A DNA stretch of 64,000 nucleotides from Macrostomum lignano (GCA_002269645.1 NIVC01001453.1:1-64000), one strand, 5' to 3'. Counted from the stretch's first letter, positions 7,820-63,981 are shown. Notes: generated by a model not told the origin, from the sequence alone. A program made the numbers and translations.

Positions 7820-10800
7820 ATGGCCGTGTCGCGTCGGAATCGGCGAAGACGAAGTCGAGGCAGCAGCGGCGACGGCGGAGGCGGCAGTGGCTCCGGCGGC
7901 GGCAGTAAGCGAGGGAAAGTGCACGTGTTGGAGCCGTTTCAACCGACGCTGGACAATTTAAACGAGTGCTGCCAGCTGGAGGAGGCGGCAGCAGAGGAGG
8001 CTGTCGACGAAGAGAAACGGCAGCCTGTTGAGCGATTGGAAGGCGACGCTGAAGACTGCGATGATCGAACTGGGTCGGTTGCTTCTGGCGACTCCGGTGC
8101 AGCGTCTTGGTGAGGGATTTGGGATCTCTGATCCTAATCTCTAGGGGTTCTTGATCCCAACAATTTTATGGATTCCTGATCCCATTCATTTATAGATTCC
8201 TGATCCCATCCCTTTTGGGTTTCCTGATCCCAACCTTTTTGGGCTTCCTGATCCCTATATTTTAAGGGTTCCTGATCCCAACATTTTTGGGCTTCCTGAT
8301 CCCATCCCTTTAGGTATTCCTGATCCCAACAATTGTAGGGACTCCTGGGCCAAACCCTTTAGAGATTCCTGATTTCAAAAATTTTAGGGATTACTGATTC
8401 CAACCCTTTGGGGATTTCTGATCTCAATATTTTTTGGGATTCCTGAATTTCTCACTAATTTCTTTTTTACTACAGATCCCAGTCCTTATTTATCCCTCTG
8501 GGAATAAGGACCGCAGTTTATTAAAGTCTAGGTGAAATTTCCAGCCTAATTATAAAAACTCTCCAAACAAAACTTAACGATGACATTTCAGCTCGCCGAT
8601 GCTGCATCGCGACTCCGTTGCCAGCGAGGATCTGGGATTGGCTGACTTATCAGGGCTTCCTGAGGCTACTAAAAACGGGTCCAGCGCTACCCTGAGTCGC
8701 AAGTCCTCTTCAACGGCCGTGCCGCAACTGCAGGACGAGTCCTTGGCATCCGATGGACCGGAACAGCAGCAGAGCAAAGCCGCCGTCATGGACTCTGATT
8801 GGGAGACGGGGCCGGAGACAATGGAACCAACCGCATCAGCAAGCGTTGTGAAATTCTTTGTTGGCGGTGATGGATTCAGTTCGGGTATGTGAGCTTGCTT
8901 ACTGATGTTTTGATGAGCTAAGCCCTATGATCCCACATCCCAAGCCTATGAGGATTCCCTGATCCCACATCCCAAGCCTATGGGGATTCCCTGATCCCAC
9001 ATCCCAAGCCTATGGAGACTCCCTGATCCCACATCCCAAGCCTATGGGGATTCCCTGATCCCACATCTCAAGCCTATGAGGATTCCCTGATCCCACATCC
9101 CAAGTCCATAATTCATGATTCATGATTCCAAATCTACAGGATTCCCGATCCCCAAATCTACAGAATTTCCAATCCCAAATCTACAGGATTCCCAATCCCA
9201 AATCTACAGGATTCCCGATTCCTCAAATCTACAGGATTTCCAATCCCGAGTCTACAGGATTCCCGATCCCAAATCTACAGGATTCCCAATCCCAAATCTA
9301 CAGGATTTCCAATCCCAAATCTACAGGATTCCCAATCCCAAATCTACAGGATTCCCAATCCCAAATCTACAGGATTTCCAATCCCAAATCTACAGGATTT
9401 CCAATCCCAAATCTACAGGATTCCCAATCCCAAATCTACAGGATTCCTGATCCCAAATCTACAGGATTCCCAATCCCAAATCTACAGGATTTCCAATCCC
9501 AAATCTACAGGATTCCCAATCCCAAATCTACAGGATTCCCAATCCCAAATCTACAGGATTTCCAATCCCAAATCTACAGGATTTCCAATCCCAAATCTAC
9601 AGGATTCCCAATCTCAAATCTACAGGATTCCTGATCCCCAAATCTACAGGATTCCCAATCCCAAATCTACAGGATTTCCAATCCCAAATCTACAGGATTC
9701 CTGATCCCCAAATCTACAGGATTCCCAATCCCAAATCTACAGGATTCCCAATCCCAAATCTACAGGATTCCCAATCCCAAATCTACAGGATTCCTATAGA
9801 TTTATAATTACCCGAATCCTCAGATACTGAATCAGCTTCCGAAGTCCAGCATCAGCAGCATCATCACCGTCGAAGAGCTTCATCCCAGCAGCACCAGCAG
9901 CGGTCAGACTGCTACACACCGCTGGACCTCGCCAGGCGCACATTCTCCGGCAACGAGATTCTAATGGAGGAGTTTTTCTTAGACCCTGAGGAGGCTTCGC
10001 AGCTGGGCGAGCTGGACCAGGACAATGTGAAAAGTCACAGATTTGACGATCTGCACGCAATGCGCCGGCATAAGATCAGCCCGGCATTGGCTTGCTCGGC
10101 CTCCGTGCAGCGCTGCTTCTCGTCTGCTGGCGGCACCAGTAGGCCAGCTGATGCTCACGGATTTGGGTGCCGATCGGAGCCGGCTCTGCTGACGCCAGCG
10201 TCTGCATCTTCGGCCACTGTTGACAGCGTGCAGGACACTGGAGACCTGCGCCAGCAGCTATCGGTTGAGGATGAAGATTTTGATGAGCCTGGGTCGCCTG
10301 CTCCTGCGCTACCTGAGGTTTGTTTGTGCTCGATTATATCTGTGCTGGAGGCAGATTCAGGGACTGAGAGATAGCGGAGAGGCGGATTCGGGGACTGAGG
10401 AAGGGGCGGAGAGGCGGATTCGGGACTGAGGAAGGGGCGGAGAGGCAGATTTAGGGGCTGAGGAAGGGGCGGAGAGGCAGATTCAGGGGCTGAGGAAGGG
10501 GCGGAGAGGCAGATTTAGGGGCTGAGGAAGGGCGGAGAGGCAGATTCAGGGGCTGAGGAAGGGGCGGAGAGGCAGTTTCAGGGACTGAGGAAGGGGCGGA
10601 GAGGCAGATTTAGGGGCTGAGGAAGGGCGGAGAGGCAGATTCGGGGACTGAGGAAGGGCGGAGAGGCAGATTTAGGGGCTGAGGAAGGGCGGAGAGGCAG
10701 ATTCGGGGACTGAGGAAGGGGCGGAGAGGCAGATTTAGGGGCTGAGGAAGGGCGGAGAGGCAGATTCGGGGACTGAGGAAGGGGCGGAGAGGCAGATTTA

Positions 10801-19335: not shown

Positions 19336-20274
19336 GACGCAACTGTTATGTTTTGTATGGTGATTCTTTTTAAAAGAAGATTTGCTTCTCATTGTCTATG
19401 GTCCAAATGTGGTCCTAAGTTAAGAAATCGGGTGCACAATTAATTAATTCTTTCCACAGTTGTGCAAGCGTAATTGGACCATGGACAATAATATATTTTA
19501 TCATATAAACATAGATATGGCTATGGCTATGCAAATTAACCAATGCATTGCTAGTCTATGCACTCAATCTTGGCATCGAGGTAAAATCTGTTCAAATGTG
19601 CTGATTTGGGACCGTCCAAACGTCATGTAATGGATCTGTCCATTGCATAGGCTTCATGAAGGGGCGCAAAGTAAATTAAAGTAAAACTCAAGACAGCTAG
19701 TAGTCCTTAATACTCGTAGTAAACAATCTGGTTGACGTAGTGGATCTGGTAGAGGCATCACTACGGAAACTGGTTTTGAGAAGACGCGGTCGTTTCTGCA
19801 TTTTCTCCAGAGGAGATTTCAACTTTAAACAACGTAATTAGGCCTTCCAAATTGGTTAAAGCGTGCATTCAACTTTATAGCGAAAGCAAGCAAATCAATC
19901 AGCATCGATATACGCGCGTTAAAAAAATGTTCGCTTGTGTTGACAAATTAAAGCCAATTTTGTCTCAGATACAATATTTTCTTTCGGCATGTATAATATA
20001 GCATCATAGACTGAAGATCAGGGCGTATACAAATGTTCAACAGAAGTCAAGCGCGTGTACCTTCGATATTGTGATGAATTAGGTCATTCAGTTTCAGTTT
20101 TCGCCACTCTCAGGCTATAAAAAAAGCAAGAACGGAAGCAGATCGAAAATATTTTGAGACTTGTTAGATCGAAATTTCTGGTTTGAATTTATTTATGTAG
20201 CAGTGTTGTGCTCATTATCGCCCAATAACTACAGTGTTTAACGGGCTTTTATCGCGGCAGTCATCGCCGCCACC

Positions 20275-20535
20275 TCACATTTGGTGACACTTCAGATAGG
20301 CAGGCGGTTTCCAGTTGTGATGCCTGTAGTAATCGCAGATAAACTTGCGCATTAACATGTTCTCCGGTCCGCGTTTAGCCGGCGCCTGAAAATCCACAGA
20401 CTCTTCTACGTAGTTTGAGTAGCTGTCCTCACTTGGCCCTTGGTTGGGGATCGCACCGCAGCAGAGTACGATGGCCGATGCTAGTAGGAGAAATTTCGAA
20501 TCGATCGCGTTGCTTTTCGCCATAATTGTTGCCAT
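20275..20535 (-). CDS. Secreted prepropeptide 1: signal peptide, acidic propiece, KR site, 31-aa two-Cys mature peptide
   Basis: Hydrophobic FLLLASAIVLCCGA. Propiece SEDSYSNYVEESVDFQAPAKR. Mature GPENMLMRKFICDYYRHHNWKPPAYLKCHQM at 20370-20278. TATA-like TATATACAA at 20602-20594 and AATAAA at 20193-20188. Clear paralogue at 28868-29155. Alternative start ATG at 20523. Confidence 0.85.
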   Translation of the reverse strand: MATIMAKSNAIDSKFLLLASAIVLCCGAIPNQGPSEDSYSNYVEESVDFQAPAKRGPENMLMRKFICDYYRHHNWKPPAYLKCHQM

Positions 20536-20593
20536 TTGTCTTCTCGTGGAAAATTAAGAGGAGAAATGAAATCTAGATACTCGTATTTTGCCT

Positions 20594-20602
20594 TTGTATA
20601 TA
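20594..20602 (-). promoter_or_regulatory. TATA-like box of peptide gene 1
   Basis: TATATACAA on the minus strand, 59 nt upstream of the ATG. Confidence 0.5.
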
Positions 20603-22033
20603 GTGGCTGAAATGCTCAATACACCCCAACTAATTTTTTTCATCCAACAACCAATCGGGATGAATAAGCGAATAATCCCAAATACTTTTTTTCGATAGAT
20701 ATTGAAAGCGTGCAGAAAAAGATTTCACCTAGATGTACGAGATCACGTAAACTAGGTCCTTTTCTTTCATAGCGCATTTGGTTAATAGCGATGCGTTCAA
20801 CAGCACCATTTAGTCGTTTTGCCATCGTGTCTTCTGAGACGACGTTTAGCGAAAGTTGCGCAGGCTGCTATCTCTGACGGCACTGGACGCAAAGAGGAAT
20901 AAGCAGCCCATAGAGGATTACGTCTGTAAGGGGTGACACAGGAGGAATGGCGCTTCATGCTGCTGGAGCGGATCAGGTGGTCACCGCCGAGAAGGCGGCC
21001 CATCGGCAGCTGAGCTGTCAGAGGCACTTGGCAGGTGCCTGCAGCGACAGGATTTACTTTTATTTTTCTTCCAGTAGCAAGCATGCAGACACTTTGCTCA
21101 CTTTTAACCATTCCAGTGGCCCAGAGATATAAAGAATACATGTACATTAAATTGGGTGAATTCCCGTTTTGAATGGCTTTTTTGCTGTTTTGATTGTCCA
21201 AATTCCTATTTAGATCGTGAAAAAGCGATACTTAATTGTCCATTAAGGATCAATGGACTATTACGGAAACTGGTTTTGAGGAGACTGCTACAATTTGAAA
21301 ACTAGAATCTAACATTCCAAATATCTACAATTTCTGTTTCTACAATCAAGAATTTTTGGCGCTACATACAAGATTAAGACGACTATAGTGATTATAATGC
21401 TGCTCAATATAGTCGGTTTTGAGTGCTTAGATGTCTATGACAGAAAAAACCCACTATTCTCATAGCGCTTTGTTGTTGTTTGTTGGTTAATTTGTTGTTG
21501 GTTATAAATATCTAATGATTATGGATTTGTGGATGAACAAAGGACTTACGAAGATTCCAAAGTACCAAAAGTGTACCAAAATTCGCCTTTCTTCTGTCCC
21601 CTCAGTGGGTCTCAGTGGATGGCAGAAACGCATTTCTCTGCCCGCTATAGCCAAAAGTCCATGCATTGTATTGTGAATCTGATGCAATGTCTGTTTCTCG
21701 TCCCGCTCGATGATTTTCAGTCAAGTTGAGAGAAGCGTTGCCAGAAGCTGGCCAGGGCGCACAAACAACTGTACCTTCAACTTCTACTTGAAGTGACACA
21801 CCAACTAACTCATCAAGAACAAGATGCAAAGACATGTCTTCTTTTTAACGTCATTTTTATTCATTGTTAAAGCAGCTTGTTATTACTGTTGTCATTCAAT
21901 TCTACGATTACGTAACATTTAACACGCGTTCTAAAATAACCTTGTATATGGTCCAATATGCTACTATACCTTTCTGCATTTGCATTCGTCATATTTGCTA
22001 CGTAAATTCCGATTGCTTATTTATGTATATAAT

Positions 22034-22162
22034 CTTTGTCTGTTCTTTTGGTTCCTATGGCAGAGAAAGGCCGAGGACGCTGTTCTCAGGCCGAGGCGAA
22101 GCCGAGGCCTTAGAATTGCGTCCGAGGTCTTTCTGCCATAGACACCAAAAGAACAGACGAAG
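22034..22162. repeat. ~130-bp imperfect palindrome with GCGAAGC at its apex
   Basis: Arms CTTTGTCTGTTCTTTTGGTTCCTATGGCAGAG... and ...CTGCCATAGACACCAAAAGAACAGACGAAG. The centre of symmetry (about 22098) coincides with GCGAAGC at 22096-22102. Confidence 0.85.
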
Positions 22163-22262
22163 ATCGTACTTAATCTACAGATATTGGAAACGACTGGGAG
22201 TGGGAGTGAGGTACTCGTCAAAAGCGGGGGTGTGGGGGGCGCAGCCCCCCCCCCACATTTAA

Positions 22263-23246
22263 CCATAGACAAAAATTAAAGTAAAAGATTCGATGCTTAA
22301 ATTAAAAGCGAGAAAGATAAGGTTTGGGCAGCTAGAGGAAATCAGAGAGAACTGAGAATCATGGAACACGACTTGGAACTCGCTTTCGACTGGTTGAATG
22401 ACATTGAATTAATTGAGAGAAAACGAGGCTTCTAGATTTGCTTTACTGTCCGATAACGAGGTTGCTGAAAGGATTGACGCTGCTGTGCCGGAATCGACAC
22501 GCCGGAAGGAACGATGGGCACTAAAGCTATTTGACGACTGGTTTCAGGAGAGGCAAACCAAACTGCTTCATGGAGACGCCTGCGGTCTATCTGTGTCTAC
22601 CTATCGGCCGGCATACTCTTGACTCCAATTGTGGCGAATATCACCAAACCCGTGTCTACGGATGGTAAATTCTCAAACCAGTCTCCAAGGAAGACTTGTG
22701 CCAGCACGTTGCATCGGGCTGGACTGGCTAGGGACGATATAGCCCGCGTCACTGGACATTCGTCCAACGCAATAGAGAGGTACATACGGCTAGACGTCAA
22801 GGACCATTCGCGTATGACCTACGCTCTACACGCCGGAGGAGCCGTGGAGTCCAATGGGCGGACCAATGAGCAAGATGTCGTGTCTGAGGGTACTACCAAG
22901 AAGATGCGCATGACTGTCCATGGTGACACCAACACCGTAGAAATCATGTTCGAGTAAATCGGCAAGAATTAATCGGTCTTTACTGCTGTTGATAGTTTTA
23001 TACTTCTAATGGACGAACTGACAAATTATAGTCGTTCTAAAATGTTCTCAGGCCTTGTTCTTAGGCCTGTTAACCGGTTAACAGGCCTCGTTTTGAGTTC
23101 TCAGGCTTCGTTTTTTAGTGAGGTTTGGCCATAGACTATCGTTCCACTAGAAAAGAAGGAGCCTAGGAATTTAGTGTGAACCGTCATATCTGTAGGTTAA
23201 TGATAGTTATTGGGCTCATCCTAAGCCAGGACCGCATAGTCTATGG
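22263..23246 (+). mobile_element. Internally deleted Crypton-like (tyrosine recombinase) element
   Basis: N-terminal fragment SRFALLSDNEV...AVPESTRRKERWALKLFDDWFQER fused directly to the C-terminal catalytic fragment FSNQSPRKTCASTLHRAGL...IARVTGHSSNAIERY (H-x-x-R...TGH...Y, with H>Q). Frameshifted. Ends are inverted CCATAGAC / GTCTATGG in TTAA-like context. Confidence 0.7.
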
Positions 23247-23744
23247 TTTAAAGTGCTTTAATTTTAGAACCATCGAATCGTTTGATGGGCTCAAAAAGTA
23301 AGACCATCAAATGATTCGATGATCCTGGAAATCGAAGCAGTTTGAATCGTGGACATTGTAAATGTATAAGGAATTCGTGTATACTGAGATCTGTGCTGTG
23401 ACGCAAACCAGTTCACGCAAATTTTCCAACTTGTAGGTGTGAATTTCAATATCCATTGGTGCATGCAATATCTAATCTGGCTTAGAAACTTCTTCGTGTG
23501 AAAAGAATAAAACAATATAATGGGAAAAATTGTTTCCAATGCGAAACTGGAGCAATCTGTCAGAAATGTAAAAAATTCGCTGACAGGATCTGCGAGCCGC
23601 ATATAGCTCGTACGAGCTGCTGATCGTTTTGCATCGGCTTAAACTTTTACTGCAGCTTTATCAACTGGTTTGACGAGCGCATCTTCAATTTCTTACTTTG
23701 TGACGCACTGCTGTTGAAGTTGTATGCAGTATGAGGATTTCAGC

Positions 23745-23751
23745 TCCTTGT

Positions 23752-23784
<33 letters not shown>

Positions 23785-23806
23785 TGTCTGTCTGTCTGTC
23801 TTAGTG

Positions 23807-23851
<45 letters not shown>

Positions 23852-23892
23852 TAGTGTGTCTGTCTGTCTGTCTGTGTGTCTGTCTTCTGTCT

Positions 23893-23927
<35 letters not shown>

Positions 23928-24001
23928 TAGTGTTTCTGTCTGTCTGTCTGTCTGTCTGTCGTCTGTCTGTCTGTCTGTCTATCTGTCTGTCTGTCTGTCT
24001 A

Positions 24002-24040
<39 letters not shown>

Positions 24041-24045
24041 TAGTG

Positions 24046-24094
<49 letters not shown>

Positions 24095-24135
24095 TAGTGT
24101 TTCTGTCTGTCTGTCTGTGTGTCTGTCTTCTGTCT

Positions 24136-24174
<39 letters not shown>

Positions 24175-24211
24175 TAGTGTCTGTCTGCTTGCCTTCCTGC
24201 CTGCCTGCTTG

Positions 24212-24278
<67 letters not shown>

Positions 24279-24295
24279 TAGTGTGTCTGTCCTTG

Positions 24296-24348
<53 letters not shown>

Positions 24349-24353
24349 TAGTG

Positions 24354-24398
<45 letters not shown>

Positions 24399-24439
24399 TA
24401 GTGTGTCTGTCTGTCTGTCTGTGTGTCTGTCTTCTGTCT

Positions 24440-24474
<35 letters not shown>

Positions 24475-24528
24475 TAGTGTTTCTGTCTGTCTGTCTGTCT
24501 GTCTGTCGTCTGTCTGTCTGTCTGTCTA

Positions 24529-24567
<39 letters not shown>

Positions 24568-24572
24568 TAGTG

Positions 24573-24621
<49 letters not shown>

Positions 24622-24662
24622 TAGTGTTTCTGTCTGTCTGTCTGTGTGTCTGTCTTCTGTCT

Positions 24663-24701
<39 letters not shown>

Positions 24702-24738
24702 TAGTGTCTGTCTGCTTGCCTTCCTGCCTGCCTGCTTG

Positions 24739-24805
<67 letters not shown>

Positions 24806-24822
24806 TAGTGTGTCTGTCCTTG

Positions 24823-24859
<37 letters not shown>

Positions 24860-24861
24860 GC

Positions 24862-24895
<34 letters not shown>

Positions 24896-24910
24896 GTCTG
24901 TCTTCTGTCT

Positions 24911-24947
<37 letters not shown>

Positions 24948-24982
24948 GTATCTGTGTATCTGTGTATCTGTGTATCTGTGTA

Positions 24983-25065
<83 letters not shown>

Positions 25066-25095
25066 TTCTGTGTATCTGTCTGTCTGTCTGTCTGT
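23745..25095 (+). repeat. (TGTC)n/(TGCC)n compound microsatellite with ~527-bp higher-order duplication
   Basis: Tetranucleotide array. The variant CTTGCCTTCCTGCC occurs near 24188 and 24715. Confidence 0.95.
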
Positions 25096-25511
25096 TTTAG
25101 CGCTTAATTTATACTACTTAATACAGTCTTCAGTAGCAACATGCAGACAATTTAAAGAGATTCTATTGACTTCTAAGCATTCCCTCAAAGTGTGCTAATT
25201 GAATCTGCCAGTTAATAATGCAAGTTCTGATTAAGATCAGGCAAGCTTAAAAAAGCTATCAGTTGCAATTTGACGGCTGAGAATCAACTGGATAAAATAG
25301 CAATGCAGAATCAGCAATCAAGTAAATTGACACGTTATATTTTATTTAAGCAGTGGGCGATAAGCTTCTTTATTAATTAGCTAATCAGTGTTATTGCTAT
25401 TGTTGGTAACATTAGCTCAGCGTCGAAGCGTCCATTAAATCAATCAGCATATCTGCATTTCAAAGCGCAGCCTCCCATCAGAATCAGTCAGACTAGCGCC
25501 AATCCCTTTCT

Positions 25512-25982
25512 CTAGTCGCTGTCATCTGCCGGCTCGATATTTCCCGTGGCAATGTCCATTGTGGCCACCGGTTTGTTGTAAGCGTTGAAGACGATCTTCT
25601 GGCCGTCCGTCTGGATGTCGGCATCGAGGCCTGCGGCATCCAGAGCAGCGTTGATTCCGCCAATAAAGTCGACGTTGTTATCAGGCTCAGAATCGTCGTC
25701 CATATCAGCCGAGCGCGGCCCCCTTAACGGAGCAGCCGAGCGCGGCCCCCTTAACGGAGCAGCCGAGCGCGGCCCCCTTAACGGAGCAGCCGAGCGCGGC
25801 CCGTATGCAGCAGCCGAGCGCGGCCCCCTTAACGGAGCAGCCGAGCGCGGCCCCCTTAACGGAGCAGCCGAGCGCGGCCCGTATGCAGCAGCCGAGCGCG
25901 GCCGTATCCAAGCAGCCGAGCAGATTAGAGCAGTGGAGATTAGCACCAGAGCGACAATTGGCAATGCGAGTTGGAACTTCAT
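25512..25982 (-). CDS. Secreted repeat-containing precursor (156 aa): signal peptide, Pro/Arg repeats, acidic C-terminal domain
   Basis: MKFQLALPIVALVLISTALICSA signal from ATG 25982. PRSAAPLRG x5 and PRSAAAYG x2 as in-frame 27/24-bp units at about 25707-25906. Acidic tail DMDDDSEPD...ADDSD. TATTTAA at 26090-26084; AATAAA at 25374-25369 and 25346-25341. Confidence 0.75.
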   Translation of the reverse strand: MKFQLALPIVALVLISTALICSAAWIRPRSAAAYGPRSAAPLRGPRSAAPLRGPRSAAAYGPRSAAPLRGPRSAAPLRGPRSAAPLRGPRSADMDDDSEPDNNVDFIGGINAALDAAGLDADIQTDGQKIVFNAYNKPVATMDIATGNIEPADDSD

Positions 25983-26779
25983 AATGCTTGCTATGCTGTA
26001 ATACTCGGTCTGTTTGTTGAATAATGAAAGGTGTTTGGAGTTAACTGGTTGGTTTTGTCTTTTTAGCGCTCTTGGATGCTCGCTTAAATAGTGGAGCCAT
26101 CGAGCGGCACTGTACCGCTCTGGGGTGAAAGCCATGGACTAGTCGGTAAAGTCAGACAGAATCAATAGCTTTGGCCATAGACTATTCATATCGGCTAGTC
26201 AGCAGCAGTCGTTTAGTCCTTCTATCTCTCTCTCATTTGTATGCGATTGAATTAAAAACTTAATGTACTTTTTCGATTCTTTAGGCTTCGCTGCTAAACT
26301 GAGGTTTCATTTCATCATTATAAAAGTCCATTTCTGTCATTCTAGAGACTTTGCTAGCGCAGCTTTGACAAGTTATCAATTGTTAATAATCATAAAACTG
26401 TAGGATCGAGGGTCTATTTTCAGAGCAGTTCATGATTGATTGACTGAAGATCAAACTGTTTGACGACAGCTACAGAAAAAAAATTGGATGAGACAGCAAT
26501 CGCATATGCCTGACCTTTTATTCAAGTGTCAGAAAAATTGTCACGTGTTATATTTGCTTCATTGCTCATCGCCAAGCTTCAGTTTCTATGCACTTGTAGG
26601 CTCGCATATGCACTTGTGTCAGTCCATTCTCGTTCAAAGGACTAAGAAAAATTAATTCTCCATTTTAGCAATCATCCTAAATACCATGTGCTCGCCCACG
26701 CGATCTCGCCCAGTCATGCAGTCACTCAGCTTTAGTGTCATGTTCTATCGCATATATCCATCGCATGAACTCTGTCACC

Positions 26780-28700
26780 AACGCATTCATGGACTCACTC
26801 ACTCACTCACTCATTCATGAAATCACTCATCAACTCACTCACTAATCAACTCACTCATAAACTAATTCATGAACTTATTCATTAAATCACTTATCAACTC
26901 ACTCATGAACTCACTCATTAAATCACTCATGAACTCATTCATTAAATCACTCATGAACTCACTCATGAACTCACTCATTAAATCACTCATGAACTCACTC
27001 ATGAACTCACTCATGAAATCACTTATGAACCCATTTATTAAATCTCTCATGAACTCATTCATTAAATCACTCATGAACTCATTCATTACATCTCTCATGA
27101 ACTCATTCATTAAATCACTCATGAACTCATTCATTAAATCACTCATGAACTCATTCATTAAATCACTCATGAACTCATTCATTAAATCTCTCATGAACTC
27201 ATTCATTAAATCACTCATGAACTCATTCATTAAATCACTCATGAACTCATTCATTAAATCTCTCATGAACCCATTCATTAAATCACTCATGAACTCATTC
27301 ATTAAATCACTCATGAACTCATTCATTAAATCACTCATGAACTCATTCATTAAATCTCTCATGAACTCATTCATTAAATCACTCATGAACTCATTCATTA
27401 AATCTCTCATGAACCCATTCATTAAATCACTCATGAACTCATTCATTAAATCTCTCATGAACCCATTCATTAAATCTCTCATGAACTCATTCATTAAATC
27501 ACTCATGAACTCATTCATTTAATCTCTCATGAACTCATTCATTAAATCTCTCATGAACTCATTCATTAAATCACTCATGAACTCACTCATGAAATCACTT
27601 ATGAACCCATTCATTAAATCTCTCATGAACTCATTCATTAAATCACTCATGAACTCACTCATGAAAACACTAATGAACTCACTCATGAAAACACTAATGA
27701 ACTTATTCATTAAATCACTCATGAACTCACTCATGAAATCACTTATGAACCCATTCATTAAATCTCTCATGAACCCATTCATTAAATCTCTCATGAACTC
27801 ATTCATTAAATCTCTCATGAACTCACTCATGAAATCACTCATGAACCCATTCATTAAATCACTCATGAACCCATTCATTAAATCACTCATGAACTCACTC
27901 ATGAAAACACTAATGAACTCACTCATGAAAACACTAATGAACTCATTCATTAAATCACTCATGAACTCATTCATTAAATCACTCATGAACTCATTCATTA
28001 AATCACTAATGAACTCATTCATTAAATCTCTCATGAACCCATTCATTAAATCACTCATGAACTCATTCATTAAATCTCTCATGAACTCATTCATTAAATC
28101 ACTCATGAACTCACTCATGAAAACACTAATGAACTCATTCATTAAATCACTATGAACTCTTTCATGAAAACACTCATGAACTCATTCATTAAATCTCTTA
28201 TGAACTCACTCATGAACTCACTCATGAACTCACTTATGAACCCATTCATTAAATCTCTCATGAACTCATTGATTAAATCACTATGAACTCTTTCATTAAA
28301 TCACTCATGAACTCATTCATTAAATCACTCATGAACTCACTCATGAAAACACTAATGAACTCATTCATTAAATCACTCATGAACTCATTCATTAAATCAC
28401 TCATGAACTCATTCATTAAATCACTAATGAACTCATTCATTAAATCTCTCATGAACCCATTCATTAAATCACTCATGAACTCATTCATTAAATCTCTCAT
28501 GAACTCATTCATTAAATCACTTATGAACTCACTCATGAACTCACTTATGAACCCATTCATTAAATCTCTCATGAACTCATTCATTAAATCACTATGAACT
28601 CTTTCATGAAAACACTCATGAACTCATTCATTAAATCACTCATGAACTCACTCATGAAAACACTAATGAACTCATTCATTAAATCACTCATGAACCCACT
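26780..28700 (+). repeat. AT-rich 24-bp (2x12) satellite
   Basis: Unit ATGAACTCATTCATTAAATCACTC with 12-bp subunit variants. Confidence 0.95.
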
Positions 28701-28867
28701 CGCTAAGATATAATATATGAATGATAAGAAACAAAGTCACAAAAAACATTTCTCAGTTATAATTCACTATTTTCTGAACTATTTGATGTCGGGTTTATTA
28801 GTTTTTATTTTTCTCGATTTATTTTAGAATCGGTTTCACAAGCCATGAGTTCCACAATTAGATTCAG

Positions 28868-29155
28868 TTAGATAAGCTTAGAGCAGTGCATTTCTTTAGG
28901 GGCAACCCAGTTGTGACTGCGGTACCAACGGCACTGCATCAAGCGCAGCATCATGAGTTCGGGACCGCGTTTGCTTCTCAAATCGAATCCTCCAGCGCCG
29001 GCGTCCAAGAGGTCGGCATAGGAGTCTTCGGTTGCTCGGACAATGGCAGCTTCCGCCGTTTGTGTTGTTGCAATTAGGACAAACAGGCAACCAATGAATG
29101 CCGCTACCATGACAACGCGCGATACAATGGCGGTCTTTCGTGAGTAGACAGGCAT
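28868..29155 (-). CDS. Secreted prepropeptide 2 (paralogue of 20275-20535): 32-aa two-Cys mature peptide
   Basis: Hydrophobic VVMVAAFIGCLFVLIATTQTAEA. Propiece TEDSYADLLDAGAGGFDLRSKR. Mature GPELMMLRLMQCRWYRSHNWVAPKEMHCSKLI at 28966-28871. TATAAAA at 29248-29242; AATAAA at 28809-28804 and 28799-28794. Confidence 0.87.
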   Translation of the reverse strand: MPVYSRKTAIVSRVVMVAAFIGCLFVLIATTQTAEAAIVRATEDSYADLLDAGAGGFDLRSKRGPELMMLRLMQCRWYRSHNWVAPKEMHCSKLI

Positions 29156-29241: not shown

Positions 29242-29248
29242 TTTTATA
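29242..29248 (-). promoter_or_regulatory. TATA box of peptide gene 2
   Basis: Consensus TATAAAA on the minus strand, about 87 nt upstream of the ATG. Confidence 0.6.
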
Positions 29249-40389: not shown

Positions 40390-41014
40390 TCCCTCTAACA
40401 TGCCGCAGAGTTGCTCAATGGGTTTCGCCCATCTCCTGGCCGCGAATCTGTGCGACTGGTTCCAGGCAACCCTCATGGAAACCAGTCACAGTGCCGCCAA
40501 AGCCGCCCAGAAGTTGCTGGCTTCGAGCGGCGCCACCGAGCTGACTCTGGTCAGCGCGGTTCGTCAGTGTCGACTCTCACTTACTCGGCGTCGGGGACAG
40601 CCAATGTCACCAGCTCGGTGACCAGCATCTGCTCCAAGGACGCCTTCTGGAGGATGGCGCCGTACCTGCTGCCGTTTACGATCGAGTACGCTCTGATGGC
40701 TGCCACCAGCGCCTATGCAATGCGCCGAAACATTGGTCGCCTGGCCCACTTCCTCACTAGCGGGCGCCGGCTGTCCAAGATTCAACGGACAATTGAGCCG
40801 TCAAAGCTGGACTGCTGGACTGCGAGTTCTGCTCGCCTTTGGCCTTGCATCCGGGATCTACTTTACCATCTATGTTAATGACATGTCCAGCAAACCCGAC
40901 ACAATTCAGCTGATCTATCAGATCACGGATTTGATCCTGCTATCGGCATGTTTAATTCTGTGCATCATTGCCTTCGTCAGGATGCGCCAGATGACCCAGC
41001 AGGTGCACGGGCTC

Positions 41015-41218
41015 TCCTTCTTTAAAAAAAGTTTTCCACTCACTTTCTACATTTTTAGTTAATGTTTGAAAAGGTTTCGAGTATGAGTTCGACGAATTCT
41101 GATCGAATATTTGAACGAATAAATATTTGAGTGAAATAAAATTGGAAATTAAAATTAACTTAAGCAATTTCAATGTTTCAAAAAAATCTGAGAAAATCTG
41201 CATTCAATGAGTATACGG
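41015..41218 (-). mobile_element. Truncated end of a putative Tc2/pogo-like DNA transposon
   Basis: Minus strand reads TA|CCGTATACTC at the exact point where Gypsy integrase sequence stops (TA at 41219-41220). AT-rich body. The opposite end is not found. Confidence 0.35.
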
Positions 41219-44200
41219 TACACTTCACCAAAAAATTCTGGCGGGGCACGGGCCCTCTCACTACGAAGCAATACAGGCTGTTCTGGATGCGCTTGAACAT
41301 CAGCAGGGGCGCCGACCGGGGCGCCGGCTGGGGCGCCGGCTGGGACGCCGTCAAATCTCAGGTCGTCCTCGTCAGGATTGTGCAGTTGCGCCGCTGGTTG
41401 CAATTGAGGTGCTGCAGCTGGACTGGCCGTGTTGCATGGCTTCAGGCGATTGAAATGCACCACCCTTCGCCGTCGTGCATTGGCCTCGTGCTGAATGCGG
41501 TAGGTGACGTCTGAGATCTGCTTTTTAACGCGCCATGGCCCAGTCCACCATCGATGAAATTTTCGGCTCTCGCCTCGCTTCAGCGCCGGATTGTGCAGCC
41601 AGACCAGATCGTCCTCGCTAAATGCCTCCCCGTGGCACCTCCTGTCGTACGCTGCCTTCTGGTGCAGTTGCGCTGCCTCCAAGTTTTGTCGCGCCCTCTC
41701 GTGCGATGTCTGCAGCCGGCTCCGCAGCTCGGCCACCCATTCACAAGGACGTTGCCTATCCGGCGCCAGACCTCCGTACGCCAAGTCCAGTGGTAGTCGC
41801 AGTTCCCGGCCGAAATGCATCGCCGAAGGTGTCTGACTAGTCGACTTGTGGACTGAAGTGCGGTAGCCCATCAGTGCAATCTGCAGATGAAGATCCCAGT
41901 CTCGCTGATTGTCGTTCCCCCATGCTCGCAGCAGCTGCACCAGTGTCCGGTTCATCCGTTCGCAACCGCCATCTCCTTCAGGGTGGTAGCCTGTCGTCCG
42001 AGTCTTGTCAATTTTCAGCAGCCGCATCGTCTCTTGAAACAGCTGCGGCTCCCAGTTCCGACTCTGGTCGGTGTGCACCGACTGCGGGACTCCAAAGCGA
42101 GCCACCCACTCGTTGAAAAACGTCCGGGCTGTGGTCTCAGCGTCTTGAGACGGCAGTGGAAAGGCCTCAGTCCACTTGCTGAAGTGTCGATGACTACCAG
42201 GATGACTGAATTTCCACGTTCGGTCCTCGGCAGGCCCACCATGAAGTCCATTTCCAGTCGCTGGCCAACGCTGCCGACCGCCATGCTCTGTAGAGGTGCC
42301 CGTCTGTGCTGGCCAGAATCCTTCAGTGTCGCGCATTCGAGGCATGCAGCACATCAGTCAGTCACATCTGCTGTCAATGGTCTTCTGCGGTCCGCAGTGG
42401 CTGCCGCTCGTTCCAGCATGAGCTTCGACAAAAACATAGCGCTGTAGACTCTCTGGCACCAGCAACTGCTGACAAAAGGCGCTGCCGTCTTCGGATTCCC
42501 ATCGGCGGCACAGCAGTCCGTTCACCAGTGTCAGCCGCTTAAACTCGGACAGCAGTTGCCGCTGCCGATTGCTCCAGCCGTCCGTCTCTGCCTTGTCCGG
42601 TGGTTGACCATTTCGCAAGCAGTTCGGCAGCTGCTGCATGCACCGATCCTCTGCCTGTGCTCGTCGAATCGCGTTGTCGTCATTGAACTCGACAGCGAGC
42701 GCCGAGCCACTGCACAGGCAAGGTCCTTTTCGACACGGTCGCCAACTAAGTGCGTCTGCATTTCCATGTTTCTCGCCCTTGCGGTACTCCGTCTGGTAGT
42801 CGAATTCGCTTAGCTTATCCAGCCACCGTGCCAGCTGACCATCGGGATCTCGAAAGCGCAGAAGATGGATCAGCGAGGCGTGATCAGTACGCAGTGTGAA
42901 TCTTTTTCCTAACAAGTAGCTGCGATTGTGACCGACGAAGTGCACAATTGCCAGCAGCTCACGCCTCGTTGTGCAGTAGTTTCTCTCTGCTTTGGACAAA
43001 ATGCGACTGCCGTACGCCACCACCTGCGTCCTGCCACCACGGCGCTCTTGAAGAACTCCGGAGATGGCCACGCCAGAGGCATCGGTATCCAGCACAAACT
43101 CAGCGTCTTCTGCGAATGTCGGCATGATGAGGACTGGGCTGGAAGTAAGGCACTGCTTTAGGCGATTAAATGCTGCTGAGCATTCGAGAGTCCAGCGGAA
43201 GGTCACGTCCTTTTGCGTTAGCTTGTACAGCGGTTCAGCAATCTCACTGTAGTTTTTTTAACAAAACGACGATAGTAGCCACACAATCCCAGGAATTGTC
43301 GCACTTCTGAACGATCTTCGGGCGTTGGCCACTCCTGCACTGCTTTCACCTTGTCCGGGTCAGTGGTCACGCCATCTTTTGAGACTCGAAAGCCTAGAAA
43401 TGAGATTTCCTGATAGCACAGGTGGCACTTGGTTGGCTTCATCTTCAGGTTAGCGGTTCTGAATTTCTGCAACACAAGCTCAAGACGCCGCAGATGCTCT
43501 TCGAATCCTGTCGAAAAGATGACAACGTCGTCAAAAAATGACAGGCACACTTCCCATCGGAGGCCCTTCAGAACGAGTTCCATCAGCCTTGAAAACGTGG
43601 CAGGACCATTGCACACACATTGCGGTAGTCTCTTGTACTGGAATAATCCCTGTGGCGCAGGAAATGCTGTTTTTGTGCGACTCTCTGAGTCCAGCATCAC
43701 CTGGGTGTACCCGCTAGTGAAGTCGAGCGTTGAGAACATTGTGGATCCTGCGAGAGCATCGATCAGATCGCTGGTGTGAGGCAGTGGATGACTGTCTTTG
43801 ACGGTCACGGAGTTGAGCAGTCTGAAGTCGTTCACGAAGCGCAAACTGCCGTCCTTCTTCTTCACCAGAATAACAGGGCTCGACCACGGAAAATTCGAAG
43901 GTTCTACGATGTCGCCTCGCACCATCTGCTCGACCATCTCTGACACAGCTCGCTGGTTCGGCGGCGACAATCGACGAGGAGGCACTCTGATGGGTTTCGC
44001 CGACCCGGTGTCAATTTTGTGGTCAAGGAGTGAAGTGCAGCCCAGGTCGTTTGGACTTTTCGAGAACACATCCTGGTACTGATGCAGATCTTTGATACAC
44101 TGAACTTGATTGGCTGTCAGATTTTTTTCATCAATGTACACATTCGGTGAATTCTCAGCGATTTGACCTTTCATTGTCTCAACTTGCATTGACAACTCTG

Positions 44201-44960
44201 CATCGGCACCATCTGACATCGGCTCAAAAGTCCCCAGTCTTGTTCCGGGGTAAAATGTATGCGGCTTGGTGTCCGTATTGACATAGTGAACGGCGATGAG
44301 TCCTCCTCGCAACAACGAGAGGCTGCGCGCTCCACACATGACCGTGGAGATGTCCTTCGAATTGTCAGGCTCAAAGATGCCGCACTCACCATCAACAGCT
44401 GCATCTGACCCACTTACCAATCTCGCTGGGAAAACGATTTCGTGACCAGCGGGCACGGTTGTCCTGTCTGCTACCTCAACGGCGAATACACAGCTACTGG
44501 CTGCCGATGACTCCATTTTTACTTGCTGACCGCACACAGTAAGCGTTTGGCGATGGCAGTCGATGACGCAGCCACAGTTTGCCAGGAAATCTGCACCCAG
44601 CAAAAAATCCTTGGCCAGATTGTCCACAACTAAAACTCTTTGTCGAACCGTTGCCACACCGAAACTTAGCTTCACTTCCTGCCAACCACAGGCAGCCAAA
44701 TAGTTACCGTCTGCCAGCTTTAACTGCACCGGAGTCGTCAAAGGCAGGAGCCTCTCATTCAGCTTGCGAAATAGGGAGCTTGACATCAAAGACTGGGAAC
44801 ACCCAGTGTCAACTAGACAGCTGGCAGGGACACACATTGGCAGGATGCGACAGTTTACCAGCATGTTGGCACCAGTGGCTGAGCAGGACACCTCCACGAC
44901 TGGTTGCGCCGGGATTCTCGCTTGCGGAACGGCACCCCAGCGGTCGCCGCTCCATCGAAG
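41219..44960 (-). pseudogene. pol: Gypsy pol (protease, RT, RNase H, integrase) broken by at least 3 frameshifts
   Basis: CLVDTGCSQSL (protease); LRFVNDFRLLN and FFDDVVIFS (RT); FVLDTDASG and RELLAIV (RNase H); HAGTSGSHCG, DFMVGLP, HTDQ, YHPEGDGGCERMNRTL and WTGPW (integrase). Frameshifts near 43255 (A7 run), 42365 and 42188. Confidence 0.92.
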
Positions 44961-45760
44961 TTTCCCGACTTCTGAGTGCAAAATCTTTGAACATGGCCCG
45001 GCTTACCGCACTTCCAGCATGTCACGACTCTGCGTCTGTCGCCGCTCTGACGATGATCCTGGTCCTTTGACTCCCAGCGGCTGAGCTTGTTGGACCGCTC
45101 CTTCAGAGACCGTTGAATTCCGACTGCAAAGGCTTCGGGAATCTCAGCAGCTAGAGCCGTAGCGGTGCCTCCTTGCGACTGGATCGATTCCACGAATCGC
45201 GCTGTTTCCACTGTATCAGCGAATGTCGCCTTTGGCTGCATCTGCGTCTGCATTCGCACAGCTGGGTCCCTCAATCCGGATAGAAACCGACCTTTGAGCA
45301 GCTCGTCCTTCGCTGTCACCGACTTCTCCTGCTCGGCACCTGCTTTCGTGTCCATCAGACTCGGGAAAGCGCGTTTTGCCGCAACGATCAGGGCATCGGA
45401 ATAGTCTGCAACCGACTGACCGTCCTTTTGAGTCAGATTGAAGAACTGCGCCTGCAGCTCAGCAGAGGATTTTGATGGCCGAAATCGATTTTTCAGAGCC
45501 TTCTCAAAATCGTCGTAGGACAGGGCAGCATCCAAATTGCTGGCCGCTTGATATGATTTGTCGTCGAGGAATGACAGCAGAGCATTCTTGCGCTGATCCA
45601 CAGGAAGAGATGATGCGAAATTGTTGAATCGCGCCAGCCAAAGTTCAAAGTCTTGTCCATGCTGGTATTGAGGCGGCCGCAAAAACATGTTGACAAAACT
45701 AGCTTGGGGCTGAGTCACCGCCACTGCAGGGCTCTCTGCACTACCTTCATTTTCAGTCAT
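44855..45760 (-). CDS. gag: Gypsy gag with CCHC zinc knuckle
   Basis: ATG at 45760. Capsid-like FELWLARF...ALKNRF and the knuckle CWKCGKPGHVQRFC. Confidence 0.9.
   Translation of the reverse strand: MTENEGSAESPAVAVTQPQASFVNMFLRPPQYQHGQDFELWLARFNNFASSLPVDQRKNALLSFLDDKSYQAASNLDAALSYDDFEKALKNRFRPSKSSAELQAQFFNLTQKDGQSVADYSDALIVAAKRAFPSLMDTKAGAEQEKSVTAKDELLKGRFLSGLRDPAVRMQTQMQPKATFADTVETARFVESIQSQGGTATALAAEIPEAFAVGIQRSLKERSNKLSRWESKDQDHRQSGDRRRVVTCWKCGKPGHVQRFCTQKSGNFDGAATAGVPFRKRESRRNQSWRCPAQPLVPTCW
44926..44966 (-). promoter_or_regulatory. Programmed -1 ribosomal frameshift signal (gag-pol)
   Basis: Slippery heptamer G_GGA_AAC at 44966-44960 in the gag frame, 6-nt spacer, 8-bp stem GGAGCGGC/GCCGTTCC. 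pol is in the -1 frame. Confidence 0.8.
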
Positions 45761-45765
45761 AGCCG

Positions 45766-45777
45766 CCGCTGCCACCA
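45766..45777 (-). promoter_or_regulatory. Primer-binding site TGGTGGCAGCGG (tRNA-Leu type)
   Basis: Complementary to the 3' end ...CCGCTGCCA-CCA of tRNA-Leu(TAG/AAG), recalled from vertebrate tRNA sequence. Lies directly after the LTR. Confidence 0.7.
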
Positions 45778-45778
45778 A

Positions 45779-45941
45779 TGTAAGAACAAGCCAAGACGAA
45801 AATAGGCTTAAGGCGTAGACCGACTCTTGGCTGCCCAGGGCGCCAAGCACTCACTTATATATTATGATTGTACAGCTAGCAAATGTACATACGGGCTAGT
45901 AAACTTGCGTACATGCAATCAACTAAACAAATCATCTTACA
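45779..45941 (-). repeat. Gypsy 5' LTR (163 bp)
   Basis: 7-bp terminal inverted repeat TGTAAGA...TCTTACA, internal TATATAAG, and the PBS follows 1 nt after the terminal CA. Confidence 0.85.
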
Positions 45942-62209: not shown

Positions 62210-63981
62210 TCAAGCCTGACTGTTCGACTTAGTCGAAGAATCCTGCAGAGCGCTCACACTGCCTGGAACAGTTGAGCACACGGTCAGGTCCGGATGACTC
62301 TGACATCGACGCTTTCTTCCTTTGTAAGCTGTTCGCCAAATTTCCACGAAACAGCAGGCCGAATGGAACCGGAAGAAGATGATCAGCGGCGAGCACACGT
62401 AGGCAAAGATGTTCGACGCGACTGGTACGTAGGCGTGACTGTAGTTTGGCAGATTGTTGATCTCGCGTATCTCCAACGTGTACACAATCCACTGGGCGAT
62501 GTTGCCCAGCAGTAAGGCGGCGATCATTTCTCGGCCGGGCTTCTCCTCGATGACTTCGTCACTTTTAGAGCGACGCTTTTCACCGTCGAGAACCAGGTAG
62601 ACCTACGAGCGTAGAAGGATTGCAGTGAGCGCATTATTAGTGAGATTTGCGATCGCGGTGCTAGCAGGAGCGTAGCCAGGATTTTTATTGATGGGGCATG
62701 TTGGGACAGCGTCAGCAACAGGAAATTTTTGATATAGCGCCCCAAAAAAAGATACAGCGTCCCCAACCAAGATACAGCGTCCCCAACCAAGATACAGCGT
62801 CCCCAACCAAGATACAGCGTCCCCAACCAAGATACAGCGTCCCCAACCAAGATACAGCGTCCCCAACCAAGATACGGCGTCCCCAACCAAGATACAGCGT
62901 CCCCAACCAAGATACAGCGTCCCCAACCAAGATACAGCGTCCACAACCATGAGACAGCGTCTCTAACCAAGAGACTGCGTCCCAAACAAGAGACTGAGTA
63001 CACTGCCGAACAAGAAATGCTCAATGAGAACAAGGCCGCTGTAACACCCTGTGTGAGTGTGTGCCAGCCCAGGGATTCACAAGTAAAAGGGCATCAACTG
63101 TCGCCAATTGAATTTCGGCAGTGCCTGAAGCCCTAATAAATATAAGTAGCATAGTGCTACTAACTAACATATATAGTATTAATTTTTTATCTGACTCTCA
63201 CCTGGAAAACGCTCTGCCCAATCGAGAGCAGGCCCTCGATGATTCGCAGTGCCATAAAAACGCCTTGCTCAGCGGACGCGCCAAACAATTGAAACATCTG
63301 ATAGGCCAGCACTCCGATCAGGGTGATGCCGAGCAGCCAGGAGTCTGGTCCCGTACCAGCCCGGTGTAGCAGAGTCAACTTGCGCATTTTGGCATTCGCA
63401 ATGGCGCACAGCACCAGATTAACTGTCAGCAGGATCAGGTCTGTGATCTGATAGATTAATTGACTTGTAACGGCGTCGTCTGGCTTGTCGTTGACGTACA
63501 CGGTGAAGTAGATCCCCGACACGATGCCCAAAATGAGCAGAAAAGCGCCAAGAAAAAAACCTTTGTCAGTTTTGTAGCAGCTGGCGGAGAAGCTGGTCTG
63601 CGATCGTTTGCGATTTCTCAGACACTTCTTGGCCACGTTGAAGCCTTTGGATTGAATGACGTCCAGAAATTTGCTAACGTTTCGATACAGAGTGAAACAG
63701 GTGAACGCCGCCATCAGCGCGTACTCGATAGTGAATGGAAACAGGTAGGGCGCCATCCTCCAGAAGACGTCTTTTGAGCAAGTGCTTCCGACACTGTGTG
63801 CAGTTGTGCTGGCATTCGAGTATGTATCATTGCTGCTGTAACTGCTACTGCCGTGGTCTCCGTCGCCGTGGTCGTTGCCGCCAGAGTGATTCTTTGTACT
63901 ATGACTCGTTTCCAGCAGGATCGCTTGGAACCAAACGCACATGTTGGTAGCTAACAGGTGCATGAAGCCCAGCACAGAGAA
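62210..63981 (-). CDS. Otopetrin (OTOP family), last two exons of an apparently intact gene; 5' part lies outside the window
   Basis: join(63981..63202, 62602..62210), both phase 0. Motifs GFMHLLATNMCVWFQ, FWRMAPYLFPFTIEYALM, KGFFLG, KPGREMIAALLLGN and PLIIFFRFHSACCFVEIW. No stops or frameshifts. Confidence 0.92.
62745..62965 (+). repeat. 20-bp minisatellite in the last otopetrin intron, about 11 copies
   Basis: Unit CCCCAACCAAGATACAGCGT. Confidence 0.93.

Follow-up and report, generated by a model that had tools for sequence, protein, structure and literature searches.

Does a pair of short open reading frames (ORFs) in the genome of the flatworm Macrostomum lignano encode the precursors of an undescribed family of secreted peptides, and what would such peptides do? 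The two genes, called here p1 and p2, lie on the minus strand of a window of 64,000 nucleotides taken from contig NIVC01001453.1 (assembly GCA_002269645.1), whose coordinates it shares. A third gene, p3, lies elsewhere in the genome. In the reading that we favor, to which we give a probability of about one half, all three are real, transcribed genes for small regulatory peptides, secreted and lineage-restricted, that would act as neuropeptides, peptide hormones, or allohormones. The family appears to be undescribed and, provisionally and within the reach of our searches, is seen only in M. lignano.

The coding sequence of p1 (20275..20535, stop included) specifies a prepropeptide of 86 residues, and that of p2 (28868..29155) one of 95 residues, with a gap of 8,333 bp between them. 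The 86-residue product of p1 is called as a gene on two M. lignano contigs, and that of p2 is 99% identical to BOX15_Mlig033203g2, encoded on the other genome copy. Because the coding sequences match called gene products of these lengths, the coding part of each gene is a single exon; the statement covers the coding parts, and introns in the untranslated regions are possible. The two proteins are homologous (BLASTP E = 1e-14), and in tblastn searches of the window each retrieves just its partner (E ~ 4e-10, the next best match having E > 1). A crude six-frame scan of the 64 kb for ORFs of 40-250 residues whose N-terminus is signal-like yielded four candidates, p1 and p2 among them. The two precursors have a common architecture, namely a signal-like N-terminus, a propiece with the motif EDSY, a KR site, and a C-terminal peptide that starts with GPE and contains two cysteines spaced as C-x15-C. 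The residues common to both in the alignment of propiece and mature parts are EDSY, F, KR, GPE, M, R, C, YR, HNW, P, and C.

All p1 and p2 features are on the minus strand. In p1, the predicted signal peptide (20452..20535) covers residues ~1-28, with cleavage expected between 25 and 28; it has a K-containing n-region, a 16-residue uncharged core, FLLLASAIVLCCGAIP, and small residues at positions -3/-1. Next come the acidic propiece IPNQGPSEDSYSNYVEESVDFQAPA (20377..20451; net charge -5 by charge count), which includes the EDSY shared with p2, and the dibasic KR site in the context PAKR/G (20371..20376; a slash marks the putative cut). The predicted mature peptide, GPENMLMRKFICDYYRHHNWKPPAYLKCHQM (20278..20370), has 31 residues, a Cys12-Cys28 loop, and a predicted monoisotopic mass of 3903.82 with one disulfide. 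A TATA box, TATATA (20597..20602), lies at -67 from the ATG, and a poly(A) signal, AATAAA (20188..20193), lies 82 nt past the stop. In p2, the predicted signal peptide (29048..29155) covers residues 1-36, the best -3/-1 site being AEA/AIV. It is followed by the propiece AIVRATEDSYADLLDAGAGGFDLRS (28973..29047; net charge -3), the KR site (28967..28972), which lies within a furin-type R-S-K-R motif, and the predicted mature peptide GPELMMLRLMQCRWYRSHNWVAPKEMHCSKLI (28871..28966), of 32 residues and with a predicted monoisotopic mass of 3940.91 with one disulfide. The TATA box of p2, TATAAA (29243..29248), is at -93 from the ATG, with a second TATAAA at -52, and its poly(A) signal AATAAA (28818..28823) is 45 nt past the stop, with two further AATAAA within 30 nt.

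Most of what the first-pass annotation had said of this pair is thus borne out. It had described two intronless, paralogous minus-strand ORFs 8.3 kb apart, and coordinates, strand, and single coding exons agree with this. The prepropeptide layout with EDSY and a KR site is seen in both genes, and a TATA box and an AATAAA were located at each. The mature peptides of p1 and p2 align without gaps, share 13 identities, have a net charge of +3, and lack a C-terminal Gly, again as claimed. A search for promoter motifs common to p1, p2, p3, and the intervening gene rep (see following) gave short A-rich words and nothing more.

The same annotation had proposed a family of two members. A profile hidden Markov model (HMM) of the p1/p2 propiece and mature alignment, scanned against 1.84 billion representative proteins, gives five matches: p1, p2, Mlig026277g1 (178 residues; a fusion discussed below), a 1,540-residue repeat protein, and Mlig013743g1. 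The repeat protein, an ORF on an ENA metagenome contig (ERZ25072724, 2001-6623; E = 2.7e-20), is an artefact, the translation of a ~58-residue tandem repeat in which 23-25 stretches of ~3.8 bits each match just 'RPELMLLR', so that the HMMER score is inflated by repetition. The fifth match, Mlig013743g1 (E = 6.6e-4), is a 126-residue M. lignano model and is the gene that we call p3; a near-identical copy (g3) is found on two further contigs. The family thus has at least three predicted, divergent members, p3 being unlinked to the p1/p2 cluster and adjoining a Delta/Jagged-like gene. When six-frame translations of the window and of six related loci were scanned with a HMM built from the three sequences, no further paralogue was found.

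The DNA of p3 (NIVC01001700.1) encodes MQRLNGSLLIALVFTMALCIATLDA... SRKRR/GPENVLMRAYQCNLYRKQGKKPPPSLKC, followed at once by a stop, and a TATAAA precedes the annotated 5' end of the gene model by ~37-42 nt. The mature part of p3 retains G1, P2, E3, R8, C12, Y15, R16, P23, and C28, with the exact 15-residue spacing between the cysteines, and ends at the second Cys; its predicted monoisotopic mass with one disulfide is 3215.65. In place of the HHNW/SHNW of p1 and p2 it has KQGK. Since HNW is absent from p3, the consensus becomes GPE-x-h-h-h-R-x3-C-x2-YR-x6-P-x4-C (where h is hydrophobic). Hence, of the consensus first proposed, the GPE, R, C-x15-C, YR, and P elements stand and the HNW element falls. 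The cleavage junctions are PAKR/GPE (p1), RSKR/GPE (p2), and RKRR/GPE (p3), the residues R-G-P-E being invariant across all three. By heuristic inspection, the three N-termini are all signal-like, with a positive n-region, an uncharged core of 16-18 residues, and small residues at -3/-1. Residues 18-22 of the mature p3 peptide, inside the loop, read Q-G-K-K-P (10340-10352 of the p3 locus sequence) and resemble an amidation and cleavage signal; if Q-G-K-K were cleaved and amidated, p3 would yield a two-chain, disulfide-linked peptide. Two features speak against such a cleavage: the site is not conserved, and it has a Pro at P1', which normally blocks convertases.

Conservation among the three genes is centered on the mature part. 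Over its first 28 residues, ungapped identities number 13 (p1-p2), 16 (p1-p3), and 10 (p2-p3), with shuffle p <= 0.0005 for each pair. Global alignment of signal plus propiece gives shuffle p = 0.0065 (p1-p2), 0.10 (p1-p3), and 0.44 (p2-p3). As the mature parts are similar in all pairs and the signal and propiece are dissimilar in two of the three, constraint lies on the mature peptide. The earlier suggestion of selection on this part is upheld once p3 is included; it does not follow from p1 and p2 on their own, for which the mature part is modestly more conserved than the rest and the N-terminal parts are weakly similar too. The flanks of p1 and p2 have zero DNA similarity in blastn, and dS (synonymous divergence) between the paralogues is ~0.9-1.8. 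These are therefore old duplicates, in which the mature peptide and the cleavage junction alone have been held. A comparison of nonsynonymous with synonymous divergence (dN/dS, by the Nei-Gojobori method), which had been proposed as a check, gives ~0.67, 0.23, and 0.58 for the mature part; values in this range (~0.2-0.7) are weak evidence and are given little weight, because dS is saturated and there are ~15 synonymous sites. Conservation focused on the mature peptide is the pattern of receptor ligands.

Confidently predicted structure is confined to the same part of the precursor. AlphaFold2, run with the three-sequence alignment, is confident in the mature part only of p1 and p2. The predicted local distance difference test score (pLDDT) is ~89-90 at residues 61-80 of the p1 precursor and ~75-80 at residues 71-90 of the p2 precursor. 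Both have the same predicted topology: mature residues 2-17, Cys12 among them, form a helix, which leads into a Pro-containing loop and, before Cys28, a short turn. The net charge of the mature peptide is +3 in p1, +3 in p2, and +5 in p3, with an isoelectric point (pI) of 9.2-9.8, and that of the propiece is -5, -3, and 0, respectively. For the helix, the hydrophobic moments (0.35, 0.23, and 0.16 for p1, p2, and p3) are low and speak against a membrane-lytic amphipathic peptide. Like p1 and p2, p3 has no C-terminal Gly.

The evidence for transcription comes from the annotation. For this genome assembly, the GenBank proteins come from RNA-seq data assembled with genome guidance (StringTie/TACO); ORFs were called by TransDecoder, and gene boundaries were set by trans-splicing and poly(A) reads (PMC5730564). 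The same paper found that as little as 2 kb or less of upstream DNA was enough for the promoters of the genes it tested. In this RNA-seq-driven annotation, p2, p3, and a fusion of rep with p1 (rep::p1) are gene models. The identifiers Mlig033203, Mlig013743, and Mlig026277 were not found in the literature text and supplements searched, a result that is uninformative on expression given the partial coverage.

The searches for described families agree with the earlier failure to place the motif: Pfam, PDB, Foldseek, protein-database, and literature searches matched none. Full precursors and mature peptides have no Pfam match at E <= 10. Against PDB sequences, the two-sequence profile gives a chance match (E = 1.4) and the three-sequence profile none, and Foldseek against the PDB gives nothing below E = 5. 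Among JGI metagenome contigs, back-translated motifs give 51 pattern matches, of which 0 are confirmed. The literal peptide strings were not found in a search of literature text. The spp/npp prohormones of the planarian Schmidtea mediterranea and the flatworm npp families that McVeigh et al. reportedly described in 2009 are like p1, p2, and p3 in phylum and in precursor logic, and many of them are also orphan and lineage-specific. For the planarian genes, a literal search for the cleavage-junction motifs in the supplements of Collins et al. (2010; PMC2953531), who catalogued these prohormones, gave no match.

A regulatory peptide read by a receptor is favored because of the precursor layout, the age of the duplicates, the conservation confined to the mature part, the invariant junction, the confident fold of the mature part only, and its poor amphipathicity. 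Secretion, disulfide formation, cleavage at KR, and function are what we infer from these features. A TATA-driven and probably cell-type-specific promoter would give a short mRNA with a single coding exon. The signal peptide would lead the product into the endoplasmic reticulum, and the Cys12-Cys28 disulfide would tie the Pro-containing loop onto the 16-residue helix. A subtilisin-like proprotein convertase would then cleave after KR, at PAKR in p1, RSKR in p2, and RKRR in p3. A homologue of one such enzyme, PC2 (RNA815_2403.2), has a severe knock-down phenotype in M. lignano (PMC4490696). Since nothing follows the peptide in the precursor, this cut would release it as a cationic, non-amidated peptide of 28-32 residues, and its N-terminus, Gly-Pro, would be aminopeptidase-resistant. 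A receptor would read the invariant GPE-x-h-h-h-R together with C12 and Y15-R16, and the more variable loop would set specificity among the paralogues.

Such a precursor architecture is entirely conventional. The precursor of melanin-concentrating hormone (pro-MCH), prepro-somatostatin, and prepro-urotensin II likewise consist of a signal, a spacer propiece, a dibasic site, and a single C-terminal cyclic peptide that reaches the stop codon or nearly so, without an amidation signal and with conservation focused on the mature part. No sequence relationship with them was found (Pfam for all; a shuffle test for MCH), and the ring of p1, p2, and p3 has 15 internal residues instead of 4-8. In these prohormone-type systems the message lies inside the ring, whereas the conserved part of p1, p2, and p3 is mainly the predicted helix N-terminal to, and overlapping, the first Cys.

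Several points weigh against reading p1, p2, and p3 as genes for regulatory peptides. No genuine homologue outside M. lignano, including in planarians, schistosomes, and cestodes, was found among the 1.84 billion proteins scanned with the profile or in a word-indexed search of 5.8 billion proteins with p1, p2, and the three-sequence profile, which returned M. lignano proteins only. A peptide of ~30 residues at ~40% identity is at the limit of what searches of billions of sequences can detect, and Macrostomum genomes and transcriptomes without annotation lie outside the searched set; the term species-restricted is for these reasons provisional. In addition, the mature-part dN/dS, moderately below 1 on ~15 synonymous sites, is weak evidence for constraint. 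Furin-type sites, non-amidation, and a single peptide per precursor do not tell neuronal and non-neuronal secretion apart. Many defence peptides, too, combine a cationic peptide with an anionic propiece, as p1 and p2 do. Finally, the locus varies in copy number and structure, as would be more usual for effector or reproductive genes that evolve fast.

This variation involves three copies of the locus in the assembly, on NIVC01001453.1 (the window), NIVC01001454.1, and NIVC01002271.1. In the window the gene order is p2 - rep - p1. The gene rep (25512..25982, minus strand) is an ORF of 156 residues that is called as a gene on all copies, a longer ORF extending to 26135. Its product has a signal-like N-terminus (MKFQLALPIVALVLISTALICSA/A), seven tandem units of 8-9 residues (GPRSAAPLR / GPRSAAAY), whose number varies among genome copies, and an acidic C-terminal part, and it has no match in Pfam; rep may be co-regulated with p1 and p2. 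On NIVC01001454.1 the order is p2 - rep - p2 - rep - p1, as the result of an 8.5-kb segmental duplication that joins the equivalents of window positions 20636 and 31967. The two p2 copies there are identical and differ from the p2 of the window by one change in the signal peptide (G to S). NIVC01002271.1 runs collinear with the window as far down as 25672 and resumes at 20473, a 5.2-kb deletion with a 6-nt alignment overlap at the junction. The deletion fuses rep in frame to p1 from '...V-LCCGAIPNQ' on. The resulting gene, annotated BOX15_Mlig026277g1 (NIVC01002271.1, 10113-10615), corresponds to window 25982-25672 joined to 20473-20275, and its precursor has the signal peptide, the repeats, and the start of the acidic part of rep, followed by the propiece, KR, and mature peptide of p1. 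The fusion may be a genuine chimeric gene or may have arisen in assembly. More generally, the locus variants reflect either true structural variation in the polyploid DV1 genome or errors of assembly.

Most of the intergenic space between p1, rep, and p2 is occupied by repeat arrays, among them (TGTC)n with ~334 copies and a 24-bp unit with ~77 copies. Large microsatellite or minisatellite arrays cover window positions 23749-25095 and 26797-28701 (and also 13.4-16.1, 32.7-36.1, and 38.5-39.3 kb), and such arrays generate long spurious ORFs on both strands. A 1.17-kb stretch of the window (22024-23197) is absent from NIVC01001454.1. The adjoining plus-strand ORFs within it (22413-22622 and 22619-22957) faintly recall the C-terminus of a tyrosine recombinase of Crypton-like type, with no significant Pfam match, and may be a mobile-element remnant. 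Further along, 41170-45850 (minus strand) is the interior of a Ty3/gypsy-type long terminal repeat retrotransposon, with ORFs that are gag-like, aspartyl protease plus reverse transcriptase, RNase H-like, and integrase. An exon of the otopetrin family lies at 63190-63975 (minus strand; Pfam Otopetrin, E = 8.6e-40), and a plus-strand ORF at 40411-40878 shares SKDxFWRMAPYLxPFTIEYALMAA with it, which suggests the presence of two otopetrin-like genes or fragments in the window.

The structure of the locus bears directly on the possibility that the peptides are exocrine reproductive or gland secretions, such as a seminal-fluid allohormone or a product of adhesive or other glands, acting on the partner or externally. 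Two studies describe, in the prostate glands of M. lignano, many secreted proteins that are lineage-specific and rapidly evolving (PMC5977470, PMC7336406), a description that p1, p2, and p3 could fit. The clustering of p1 and p2 with rep, a repeat protein of secreted type, the duplication and fusion among genome copies, and a dN/dS that is not low in two of the three pairs point the same way. However, the strong retention of the N-terminal motif of the mature peptide across old paralogues would be unexpected for arms-race proteins, and p3 lies beside the Delta/Jagged-like gene and not in a cluster of gland genes. On balance, we regard a gland secretion as less likely than a regulatory peptide.

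Somewhat less probable still is a host-defence (antimicrobial) or toxin-like effector, in which an anionic propiece would keep a cationic disulfide peptide inactive until furin-type release in gut, epidermal, or gland cells. The charges of the mature peptides and of the p1 and p2 propieces suit such a role. So does the layout, which equals that of amphibian antimicrobial-peptide precursors. The Rana-box precursors (brevinin, esculentin, and ranalexin), for example, combine a signal, an acidic propiece, and KR with a cationic peptide made of an N-terminal helix and a C-terminal disulfide loop. The furin-type rule RxK/RR is fitted by RSKR (p2) and RKRR (p3), sites that suit the constitutive pathway. 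A species-restricted family in a tandem cluster whose copy number varies among genome copies would also be in character. However, the Rana-box loop has 5 internal residues instead of 15 and there is no homology, the low hydrophobic moment (0.16-0.35) sets p1, p2, and p3 apart from these peptides, and the propiece of p3 is not acidic. The conservation pattern is the opposite of that of antimicrobial-peptide and toxin families: in the precursors of frog antimicrobial peptides and of conotoxins it is the mature peptide that varies, behind a conserved signal and propiece, the reverse of what p1, p2, and p3 show. Arenicin, a defence peptide of comparable ring size, was also considered as a relative and rejected, as the alignment is not significant.

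That the genes are non-functional, whether as ORFs that arose by chance or as duplicates in decay, and yield no peptide is very improbable. They are short ORFs, two of them within a repeat-rich and structurally unstable region, as this explanation would have it, but three old paralogues have kept intact ORFs, equivalent stops, both cysteines, and the cleavage junction while their flanks diverged fully; moreover, they are gene models in an RNA-seq-based annotation, and the copies on other genome contigs are 99-100% identical in protein sequence.

Least of all is to be said for a diverged protostome member of a known family of cyclic peptides, MCH or natriuretic peptides, an idea that is effectively refuted at the level of sequence. 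Like pro-MCH, the precursors end in a non-amidated cyclic peptide after a dibasic site, and p2 shares MLR.M..R.YR with human MCH, with 7/11 identities in one ungapped block (shuffle p = 0.04), but p1 (p = 0.43) and p3 (p = 0.36) do not follow, salmon MCH has no similarity with any of the three, the Cys residues are not aligned, and the MCH ring is C-x8-C with an LGRVYRP core. The natriuretic peptides ANP, BNP, and CNP do have the same 17-membered ring (C-x15-C), C-terminal in a precursor processed by a protease of furin or corin type, but p1, p2, and p3 lack their signature CFGxxxDRIxxxSGLGC, have no Pfam match, and are predicted to form a helix and a loop, and alignments with ANP and CNP are not significant.

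The reading of p1, p2, and p3 as precursors of regulatory peptides can be extended, tentatively and at somewhat less than even odds, to a new peptide-hormone or neuropeptide system with its own receptor in macrostomorph, and perhaps all, flatworms. In such a system each paralogue would be a ligand of its own, with a helical GPE-x-h-h-h-R message stapled to a loop of 15 residues, and new precursor architectures would still be arising, as the rep::p1 fusion and the duplication of p2 would illustrate. What is known of peptide signalling in flatworms concerns mostly amidated peptides without cysteine, and many of the receptors are orphan. If the family were limited to one species, its wider significance would be small; if the peptides were defence or seminal-fluid effectors, they would still be a first example of that chemistry in M. 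lignano. PMC5730564 and PMC8717057 present M. lignano as the one flatworm with routine stable transgenesis and RNA interference. A small and cleanly defined set of cyclic candidate ligands, whose promoters are compact and contain a TATA box, is therefore directly testable in this species.

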